From NCBI GenBank assembly GCA_965644315.1, contig CBFFRQ010000018.1, positions 496,001 to 560,000 on the forward strand: DNA of 64,000 nucleotides. Direction: 5' to 3'. Positions within the stretch are counted from its first letter, which is position 1, and each line of letters starts with the position of its first letter. The DNA is from Caecitellus pseudoparvulus. Lineage: Eukaryota; Protista; Bigyra: Bicosoecida. The notes below the pieces were generated by a model. That model was not told where the DNA came from. It saw only the letters and a program-made list of their open reading frames with translations, and did not search any database. Shown piece after piece: positions 39,885 to 49,888 of this stretch. The position numbers and the translations under genes are program-made.

Positions 39885-41704
39885 TCACTTCTTGCTCTCC
39901 AGCTTATCAAGGCGAGCTTCCAGCCCTGCCAGCCGCGCATTGACGGTCTTGAACTGCTCCGCCATCGCAGACAGCAGCTGCGACTTCATACCCTCCAGGG
40001 CGCCTGCCAGGGGACCAGCAGACCCGGCAGCCGCTGCAGCAGACTGGCCAATGCCATCCTTGGGTGGGGGGGGCACACTCTTGGGGCCTGCAGACATGCC
40101 GGGGGGCGCCTTGGCTGCAGCATCGGACGCCACCACGGCTGCCTCGGCCGGTGCTGCCGGCTCAGCTGACATGCCGCCTACATCTTGTGTGGTCGCACTG
40201 GCCAGCCCCGCCATGCGAGTGGACACTGGGCGTACACGGGAGGGGTTGAAGTGGGCGGCCTCGCTGAGCATGAAGCCCTGCAGCTCAGGCTTGGTCATGG
40301 CGCCAGTGCCTTCGAAGGCGAAGGACACCCGAGTGGGGCACTCCGGCTCGTCGTCGGGGAAGTGGTAGTCGGCGAGGTAGGGGTGGGCCAGCGCGTCGGT
40401 GACTGTGATGCGCTTGGCGGGGTCAAATGCCAGCATCTTCTGTAGGAGGTCGATGGCCTGGGGGTTGGCATGGGGGAAGAGCTTGTGGAAGGAGACAGGG
40501 GCGCGCTGTCCCATGGCCTGCACCGCCTTGAGCGCAGGGCGCTTGCGGATGAACCAGCAGTCCGCATCTGATGGTGTGCCCAGGATGTCGATGATCACCT
40601 GCAGTTGGTGCAAGTAGTTCCGTCCAGGAAAGAGAGGGCGGCGGCCGAGGATCTCAGCCAGGATGCAGCCGATGCTCCACACGTCGATGGCGGCGTCGTA
40701 GCTATCAGCGCCCGTCAGCAGCTCTGGCGCGCGGTACCAGCGCGTGACAACGTACTGCGTGAGGTCTGCTGCAGAGGCATCGTCCTCGCCTTCGCCCATG
40801 GGGCGAGCCAGCCCGAAGTCACACACGACCAGCTCACAGTTGGCGTTCACAAGGATGTTCTGGGGCTTCAAGTCTCGGTGCAGGACGTTGGCAGAGTGAA
40901 TATACTTCATCGCGCGCAGAATCTGGTACACAAAGTACTTGATGTGGCTGTGACAAGAGGGAGCAAGGCGTCCGGGGTGCTGATGCCGCGACATGCAGCG
41001 TGTGTCCTATCCGCGTGGGGCTCACCTGTCCGACAGTGTCTGGCTGCTTTCAATAATGCGGCTGAGATCCGTCTCCATGAGGTCAGTGACGATGTACACG
41101 TCCTTGAAGTTGCTGCGCTGGGGGGACACCTGCAACGCCAGGCGGAGGAAGGTGTCGACCTTGGCTGGGCGGGTAGCTTGTCTGCGCCGCTTCGCACCAT
41201 GATGTCCAGAATGTACAGCAGGTTCTCGTGGTGGTTGAAGTGCTGCAAGAGGCGCAGCTCCCGCAAGATGCGCTTGGCGTCAAGGAGCTCCCGAAAGGTG
41301 TCTTTGATCTGTGCAACGCGCGGCGCAAGCTGTGCCCCACGCCAGCAGCACACCTCCGCTGGCCCAGCCCGTACCTTCTTGATGGCCACCTTCGTCTTCT
41401 TCTTCTGCAAGGACAGCACAGGTAAGGCGTGGTGCGCTGGGGGTTTGGCTGGTCAGCCAACAGAAAAAGCGCCAAGAAAGCCGCGGCCGATCTTGCAACT
41501 CCCCGCGCAACGCGGGTGAAACGTCAACCTGCCCACAGCTTGACGTACGGTATCATAGGCAGCTGCCACAAAGCCGTAGGCGCCCCCACCAATGTACTTG
41601 AGCTTGGTGTACCGTTCATCTACGTCAAACTCTTGGTCCTTCACCATCACGCGGTGGTAGCGCCGCTTCTCCAGCGGGTACGGCTCAGTCGTGGATGCAG
41701 CCAT
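39885..41704 (-). CDS. Mitogen-activated protein kinase (ERK/plant-type), multi-exon, TQY activation motif
   Basis: [68 protein letters not shown] and common-docking-like [12 protein letters not shown]. Confidence 0.95.
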
Positions 41705-48679: not shown

Positions 48680-49014
48680 AGCAGGTGCTGCAGAGCCATT
48701 CGCGTTGCTCCTGCACCATAGCTGGCATCCCAACCCCCCCATGCCGTTGCTGCAGTACCTGAGTTGTTTGTCAGGGCTTTCTCTGATGCAGCGAGAGTCG
48801 CTCCCCCCCCCCCCCCCCTTTCACAGCTGCTCCTTCCATCACATCCACTCGCATGGACACATCCGAGTGAACCCTGAATCTTGGTGAGCGGGCTGGGGCT
48901 GGTGCAGTACCCTCCCGCCTCTCCAGCTGCTTGCAAGCTGCAGTGGGCGAGACGCGGAACTGATTTCCGCTCAAGCTTGCCGAGCTGATGCGGAACCGCA
49001 CAGAGAAAGCCGGC

Positions 49015-49777
49015 ATGGCGACAGCCCAGACCCAAGCGGCAGACCCAAGCCCCCTAGTTCCATCTTCAGAGCACCTTGATCGCGAACAGCGTCCAGACAC
49101 TGGTATGTGCCGTCTCGTGTTCACAGGCGGCATACGTCACATTGGCACCGCCACGCCAACTGCCTTTCCCCCCCCTCTGCGCAGAGGAATACGCCGTGAA
49201 GAACGAACGGGTGAGAGAGAAAAGTGACAAGACATGGAGATATGTCAGAGGCACAGTCATGCTCCTTGTGTCGGTGGGCGTGCTGCTGTAGGTGGCGCCG
49301 TACGCTTTGGCTGTGGCTCACACCACATGAAAGACTCCACCCCACCACGCTCAGGGGCTGCTTCCTATCGAATGCCACTCGGTGGTGGAGGGTATGGTTC
49401 TTCCTTCCAGGGCTCCTCATGGTGCACGAGTACCTCACTGGGTACCGTGGCTTGTGAGGCGCAGCTGCGGTACGTGCGGGCTCATGGCAGGTCTGCCCGG
49501 TCTGCACACTTGCAGTTCTCCTGCTCGACGAACCTCGCGCAGGTAGGATACTGGAACCCTGATGGCAAAGGGTACCGCCCTGTTCCTGCGAAGTATAAGG
49601 AGTTCGCAGCCAAGATGCAGGTGTGTACAAGTGCCGTTGCTTGCAACCCAGCTGGCCGCAACGCATTGGCCTCCTCGCGACCTGGCACAGGCACGATATT
49701 ACCAACACTTGGGCATTGTGACTGCTATTACTCTGGTCCTCACGGCCGCCGTGGTGGCCATCCCGGAGGATTTGTAG
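49015..49777 (+). CDS. Putative membrane selenoprotein (MSP-like), 5 exons, UGA-Sec at 49455-49457
   Basis: Exons 49015-49102, 49185-49287, 49355-49469, 49543-49620 and 49691-49777 (all GT-AG) give ...RYVRGTVMLLVSVGVLLGCFLSNATRWWRVWFFLPGLLMVHEYLTGYRGL[TGA]GAAAVGYWNPDGKGYRPVP...MQARYYQHLGIVTAITLVLTAAVVAIPEDL*. A SECIS-like hairpin lies about 60 nt downstream. Confidence 0.75.
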
Positions 49778-49831
49778 CTCACCTGTCCTGCAAGCCGGCG
49801 TGCAGGCTCCACGCCCCCGAGAGCTGACCCC

Positions 49832-49888
49832 GCACAGACGACGGGGCTTGCTGCAACTGCTTCATGCAGATGCAAGCCCCCGATATGC
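49832..49888 (+). promoter_or_regulatory. Candidate type II SECIS element with non-canonical ACGA core
   Basis: ACGAC (49838-42), GGGGCTTGC (49843-51), TGC, AA (49855-56), mini-stem CTGC/TTCAT/GCAG, AT, GCAAGCCCC (49872-80), CGAT (49881-84). This gives a perfect 9-bp helix II, tandem GA/GA quartet geometry and apical AA 13 nt after the core. Confidence 0.7.

Follow-up and report, generated by a model that had tools for sequence, protein, structure and literature searches.

A hidden five-exon gene of Caecitellus pseudoparvulus that very probably encodes a membrane selenoprotein with likely prokaryotic relatives

The window analysed here is a stretch of 64,000 nucleotides from the marine protist Caecitellus pseudoparvulus (assembly GCA_965644315.1, contig CBFFRQ010000018.1, positions 496,001 to 560,000 of the forward strand), and all positions below are counted within it. 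On its plus strand lies a gene of five exons and 156 codons with a single internal stop, a TGA at codon 98 (49455-57). A preliminary description had pieced together this hidden gene by GT-AG splicing, as a protein of about 155 residues; RNA splice joints and an orthologue bear out the five-exon structure. Translation of the joined frame likewise bears out that the one in-frame TGA is followed by four codons and then by the GTACGT donor of intron 3. The features of the locus are as follows.

49015 to 49102, plus strand: exon 1, starting with ATG; residues 1-29, a poorly conserved N-terminal tail; joint to exon 2 present in three RNA runs; ATG and donor kept in the orthologue.
49103 to 49184, plus strand: intron 1, 82 nt, GT-AG; spliced in RNA contigs X5, X11 and X18.
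49185 to 49287, plus strand: exon 2, a basic stretch, then predicted transmembrane helix 1 (TM1); best diagonal -29 on the prokaryotic family profile.
49288 to 49354, plus strand: intron 2, 67 nt, GT-AG; spliced in RNA contig X15.
49355 to 49469, plus strand: exon 3, the WR-x4-LP helix, predicted TM2, the selenocysteine (Sec) codon and four more codons; spliced RNA contig through 49471; best diagonal -29.
49455 to 49457, plus strand: in-frame TGA, codon 98, very probably Sec; present in spliced RNA, kept in the orthologue, on Cys column 69 of the profile (scored as X); TGA at the same column in 14 Gemmatimonadota.
49470 to 49542, plus strand: intron 3, 73 nt, GT-AG; orthologue with GTGAGT donor and an acceptor in the same register; one RNA-library contig spans it unspliced.
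49543 to 49620, plus strand: exon 4, predicted cytosolic loop and hairpin; 88% identical in the orthologue.
49621 to 49690, plus strand: intron 4, 70 nt, GT-AG; a 13-nt loose end before 49688 in RNA contig X15 equals the end of exon 4.
49691 to 49777, plus strand: coding part of exon 5, predicted TM3 and TAG stop; matched in the orthologue.
49838 to 49884, plus strand: type II SECIS-like element with ACGA core; quartet CGAC/CGAU, 9-bp helix II, unpaired AA, 4-bp mini-stem; z -3.7.

A mitochondrial carrier gene (PF00153; 47622-48742, minus strand) stands head-to-head with the selenoprotein gene, the two start codons being 272 nt apart, and one RNA contig of the selenoprotein gene starts at 48887. 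Directly downstream is an intronless open reading frame for a glycoside hydrolase of family 47 (PF01532; 50229-52742, plus strand) with a long Pro/Ala-rich stalk.

The gene was covered by contigs from four independent RNA runs. Intron 1 was spliced out in three of these runs and intron 2 in one, and intron 4 was represented by the loose end only. Contig X15, from which intron 2 has been removed, spans 49355-49471 with the TGA unchanged and one other difference. Retention of the TGA in spliced RNA, which the preliminary description had named as a check, was thus observed; it excludes the use of upstream donors in that molecule, and the presence of the TGA in an RNA contig argues against an assembly error. 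The splice joint of intron 3 was absent from the RNA contigs of the four runs, the contig at this place being unspliced. The boundaries assigned to intron 3 are those suggested by the orthologous sequence L003, in which donor and acceptor stand at the same places.

This orthologue was the one relative found with exon 3 among 1.8 billion representatives, the other matches being two repeat-rich chance matches. It sits on two metagenome contigs and keeps the TGA and all four introns, with a consensus GTGAGT donor four codons past the TGA. Exons 2-5 are equal in length in the two genes, and 111 of 127 positions are identical; exon 3 up to the TGA is 88% identical. The two genes differ at 15, 8 and 64 sites in codon positions 1, 2 and 3 respectively. 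Among the codons after the TGA, 24 are identical, 28 differ synonymously and six non-synonymously, which indicates that the downstream part is translated; on these sequence comparisons the region past the TGA is under strong purifying selection. The contig of this sole eukaryotic orthologue found ends upstream of where a SECIS would lie. Its protein record (P0001), used as a query in a homologue search, returned itself only. The exon pieces had no match in Pfam or NCBIfam, and none was found in metagenome scans with exons 3 and 4 or in a tblastn search of plasmids. Only chance or out-of-frame matches came up when exon 3 was run against GTDB and in three further searches that each covered a phylum.

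These data bear on the reading that the TGA is a true stop or is spliced out, leaving a two-helix protein of 97 residues or a TGA-free isoform. The gene caller's record of the orthologue, P0001, does end at the TGA, intron 3 is seen in RNA only in unspliced form, and open splice combinations that skip the TGA exist on paper. One of these corrects the preliminary description, according to which splicing from the donor at 49442 always runs into a stop: joining it to the acceptor at 49490 removes 49 nt and leaves an open frame. The orthologue has neither the GT at 49442 nor the AG at 49490, so the conclusion against TGA-skipping splicing stands. With the TGA kept in spliced RNA, the 28 synonymous against six non-synonymous changes past it, the SECIS, and Cys or TGA at this position in bacterial homologues, we regard termination or removal of the TGA as very improbable.

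The SECIS-like hairpin starts 60 nt past the TAG stop. RNA coverage ends at 49825, and the element would be carried in the 3′ untranslated region (UTR) of the mRNA. Like eukaryotic type II SECIS elements, it has a tandem GA/GA quartet and a helix II, an AA left unpaired 12-13 nt above the core and a mini-stem at its apex, and it would lie in the 3′ UTR. It differs from them in the core, which reads CGAC (CGAN) and so departs from the published UGAN consensus (PMC3753652). According to the search patterns described in PMC2375036, the core demanded by standard searches is NTGA. Rfam model RF00031 gave no SECIS match in this genome.

An ACGA core was found in all four selenoprotein genes of this organism whose SECIS was checked, the others being a SelT-like gene with CxxU (L005, G000:C53, minus strand), a SelK/S-like gene (L023, G000:C28) and the gene for SPS2, in whose SECIS CC replaces AA in the apical loop. 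Between the element described here and the SelT-like one, all 13 base pairs hold, five of them with both sides changed. Within 21 kb, the SelK/S-like and SPS2 elements were the top matches of a model built from these two elements, with weak E values (0.035 and 0.28); genome-wide the model recovered only its two training elements, the third match being noise. When the 500 nt that follow the stop were shuffled 3000 times, a rule fitted to the ACGA elements fired once; over the 64-kb window this rule gave no other SECIS on the plus strand. A loose ACGA pattern was uninformative over the genome. The second match of the rule in the window (40311-40354, minus strand) was rejected, as it has no SECIS fold and lies inside a coding exon of a MAP-kinase-like sequence with a TQY activation-loop motif (about 40100-40900, minus strand). 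Two glutathione peroxidase genes and one Sep15/SelM-like gene of the genome (L006, L007 and L010; G000) had no SECIS by the ACGA rule; as L007 has Cys in its active-site motif, these genes may be Cys forms.

The machinery for Sec, listed in the preliminary description as a further check, was present in the same 30.6-Mb genome. We found a tRNA-Sec (72.6 bits, anticodon TCA), an intact SepSecS at most 59% identical to the closest sequences found, a match to domain 4 of eEFSec, and an SPS2 gene (L024, G000:C56) whose UGCK motif is itself encoded with an in-frame TGA. By its SepSecS the organism is a divergent eukaryote, which a tree of this protein did not place; its 18S sequence, 1697 nt long, would be of bicosoecid stramenopile type. 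Taken together, we are highly confident that the gene encodes a selenoprotein in which UGA98 is read as Sec.

The preliminary description had likened the protein to MSP, a membrane selenoprotein of Ostreococcus, Chlamydomonas and Dictyostelium. Both are small multi-pass membrane selenoproteins of unicellular eukaryotes without known function, and this is what speaks for a divergent MSP. We compared the two by eye with the published alignment (PMC2375036, supplement 2). MSP proteins have about 175-230 residues and, in that alignment, a PALVG-S/A-U-C-WPLL motif close to where the membrane region begins, with LCADP.RH.LQD and CLS..GW further downstream; the text of the paper gives the number of Sec as two (Lobanov et al. 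2007, PMC2375036). The first motif with its two Sec is absent from our model, which has one TGA, and neither downstream motif was seen on inspection of all five exons; the single Sec follows helix 2 in the context Y-R-G-L-U-G. The assignment to MSP was not sustained, and given these differences in Sec context, Sec number and conserved motifs we consider such membership highly improbable. Hypothetical selenoproteins 1 and 2, as given in the same supplement, differ from the protist protein too. SELENOK and SELENOS are likewise small selenoproteins of membranes, in which Sec faces the cytosol and a thioredoxin fold is absent; unlike the protein described here they are single-pass, with Sec near the C-terminus in a disordered tail, and a gene of that type lies elsewhere in the genome (L023).

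A second suggestion, that the pattern 'RWWR..FLP...GL-U-G' recalls a related bacterial membrane family with Cys at the TGA position, fared better: the pattern matches a prokaryotic family of this kind and not MSP. We entered this family by searching Actinomycetota for the pattern PGxCNIG. Most matches were MurA and SucD, and the remainder gave three usable membrane proteins of 124-136 residues with no Pfam or NCBIfam match, to which at least 2462 clusters are related. The family profile matched in 14 of 121 Gemmatimonadota, one of 151 Acidobacteriota and three of 81 Halobacteriota genomes, and a Pseudomonadota-type sample gave one weak match in 401 genomes. A weak match (E 1.6e-4) lies in an 865-residue open frame and is a possible fusion (L102; G1116:C10:885750-885974, minus strand). 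No conserved gene neighbours of the prokaryotic members were found.

In Gemmatimonadota (L084-L097, for example L085:1477-1845:+) all 14 homologues have one in-frame TGA at the conserved Cys of the family. Directly after it follows a stem, CGCGC/GCGCG, whose loop begins with GG; this hairpin does not vary at all, third codon positions included. A tRNA-Sec was present in each of the five Gemmatimonadota genomes tested. The TGA at the Cys position, the invariant hairpin and the tRNA-Sec together indicate that this is also a bacterial selenoprotein family. The Actinomycetota, Acidobacteriota and Halobacteriota members have Cys at the equivalent position. These Cys forms keep a second, N-terminal Cys in the CNIG motif (120 of 120 Actinomycetota-like matches and 4 of 4 others), and in the 13 complete bacterial Sec forms it is replaced by P or A; as all of these come from one phylum, the N-terminal Cys was probably lost in a single event. 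New selenoprotein families are rare. Among the entries compared in the table of a 2026 review, which lists bacterial selenoprotein families by Pfam, NCBIfam or CDD model, none fits (PMC13188914), nor does any of the deep-Sep additions when compared by name. The family thus appears to be undescribed as far as these published lists go, and may be listed elsewhere.

Similarity between the protist protein and the family was tested exon by exon, with the TGA scored as X. Single-exon HMM scores were weak (best 7.5 bits), and the family profile, searched genome-wide, had no match in the protist. One and the same diagonal, -29, came first of about 145 for exon 2 and for exon 3 (shuffle p 0.002 and <0.002), and on this diagonal the TGA lands on the Cys column of the profile. 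Exon 4 ranked a neighbouring diagonal second and exon 5 ranked diagonal -29 fifth, neither being significant alone. The colinear exon-wise score was 52.3 bits for the protist gene and 47.6 for the orthologue. In the controls, shuffled exons scored 25.7 ± 2.7 (maximum 38.2), reversed exons 26, and 191 natural hydrophobic decoys 25.2 ± 3.4 (maximum 37.7).

Both share a basic stretch, helix 1, WR-x4-LP, helix 2, Cys or Sec 23 residues after the Trp, a loop and helix 3, and Sec forms occur in Gemmatimonadota as in the protist. They differ in that identity is low, in a 30-residue N-terminal extension of the protist protein, and in the recoding signal, a hairpin right after UGA in bacteria and a SECIS in the 3′ UTR in the protist. 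The (C/P/A)-N-I-G motif, present in all complete prokaryotic members examined, is absent from exon 2 of the protist gene. On the exon-wise evidence, remote homology of the protist protein to the prokaryotic family is likely, with Cys or TGA in the homologues at the column of the protist TGA, as the preliminary description had expected.

The number of helices proposed for the protein was upheld in part. Hydropathy gave two clear hydrophobic stretches, residues 46-74 and 131-156; the third helix would come from splitting the first of these, on the strength of homology to the bacterial family as modelled. An AlphaFold model of an Acidobacteriota Cys form (L098:1459-1830:-; med09923ee198; pLDDT 90) has helices at residues 16-42, 47-69 and 93-123; the Cys is followed by a short helix and a beta-hairpin. 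Searches of the PDB by sequence and by fold gave nothing above background (best Z 7.1). In the ESM Atlas the model matched five clusters, three of them prokaryotic and unnamed and two made up of fungal RGS-domain proteins. One of the fungal clusters is annotated RAX1_C, and both match over all 124 residues, with TM scores of 0.89 and 0.84; for the Rax1 membrane domain the rmsd is 1.6. Rax1 has an RGS domain, three putative C-terminal transmembrane segments and a role in bipolar budding (PMC9506272). Its C-terminal domain (PF27892, RAX1_C) is like the bacterial Cys form in predicted fold and in having three C-terminal transmembrane segments; unlike it, Rax1 is fungal, fused to an RGS domain and not known as a selenoprotein. 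No RAX1_C match came up when family members were scanned with Pfam, in a copy whose inclusion of PF27892 is unconfirmed. The link from Rax1 to the protist protein would run indirectly, through the bacterial family, with the fold predicted on both sides. We find it rather probable that one undescribed family spans the domains of life and has the fold of the Rax1 membrane domain: its Sec forms would belong to Gemmatimonadota, with a bacterial SECIS, and to a lineage of marine protists, with an ACGA-core SECIS, and its Cys forms would number thousands of proteins of bacteria and archaea.

The placement of the Sec residue was considered from the distribution of charge. Lys and Arg number 6, 2, 7 and 0 in the successive segments of the protist protein. 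The basic residues in the N-terminal segment and in the loop after helix 2 suggest that both are cytosolic, which would put Sec at the cytosolic membrane surface. The spliced protein has a single Cys, at residue 66, none on the Sec-bearing cytosolic face, and no CxxU or UxxC motif. To our knowledge, Sec serves redox chemistry in nearly all characterised selenoproteins. In the mechanism that we propose, tRNA-Sec and eEFSec would decode UGA98 under the ACGA-core SECIS of the 3′ UTR, and Sec, at the cytosolic end of helix 2 by the positive-inside rule, would act at the membrane surface as the one nucleophile of a redox site. After oxidation, or after forming a mixed selenosulfide with a substrate or partner, it would be reduced again by cytosolic thiols. 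In the prokaryotic Cys forms the second Cys, in CNIG, would lie on the same face and could resolve a disulfide. The residues found in the family would fit a redox site that works either with two paired Cys or with a single Sec. We give even odds to a redox role of the Sec site in the protist, and judge the explanation as a whole, a three-helix membrane selenoprotein of an undescribed family with a lone-Sec redox site at the cytosolic membrane surface, to be evenly balanced as well.

Two other functions were weighed against the redox site. The protein could be mainly a membrane adaptor or landmark, like the Rax1 domain, with Sec or Cys as a regulatory switch or a site of acylation or partner linking and not as a catalyst. 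This would agree with the absence of a classical redox motif, with the match of the family model to Rax1-type RGS proteins over 124 residues (TM 0.89 and 0.84), and with the action in bipolar budding of Rax1 and its three C-terminal transmembrane segments (PMC9506272). Yet that fold match is a prediction on both sides, the domain stands alone in prokaryotes, and the cost of Sec is hard to justify in a passive scaffold; we think an adaptor unlikely. Alternatively, the protein may use Sec or Cys to bind a soft metal ion (Cu or Hg) at the membrane or to pass it on. Small membrane proteins of the MerT/MerF type with cytosol-side Cys handle metal ions, and in the Cys forms of the family both Cys lie on one face. 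Among the bacterial selenoproteins tabulated in PMC13188914 is a putative mercuric transport protein that contains Sec. Against metal handling, the Sec forms offer a single ligand, and none of 20 neighbours scanned was a metal-resistance gene; we regard it as improbable.

Sec points to the functional residue in a family that has thousands of members and no Pfam or NCBIfam match or known function. As Sec marks this residue, the family becomes testable, at one residue and one membrane face, in small Cys and Sec forms that can be expressed. Because of the ACGA core, no selenoprotein of this lineage would be picked up by the usual NTGA-based searches; the core also poses the question how the lineage's SBP2 recognises a quartet that begins with C. 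Rax1 has long been studied in yeast as a polarity protein, and the predicted likeness in fold offers a test for it; if the link is true, the Rax1 polarity landmark would have an ancient origin in thiol/selenol redox chemistry.
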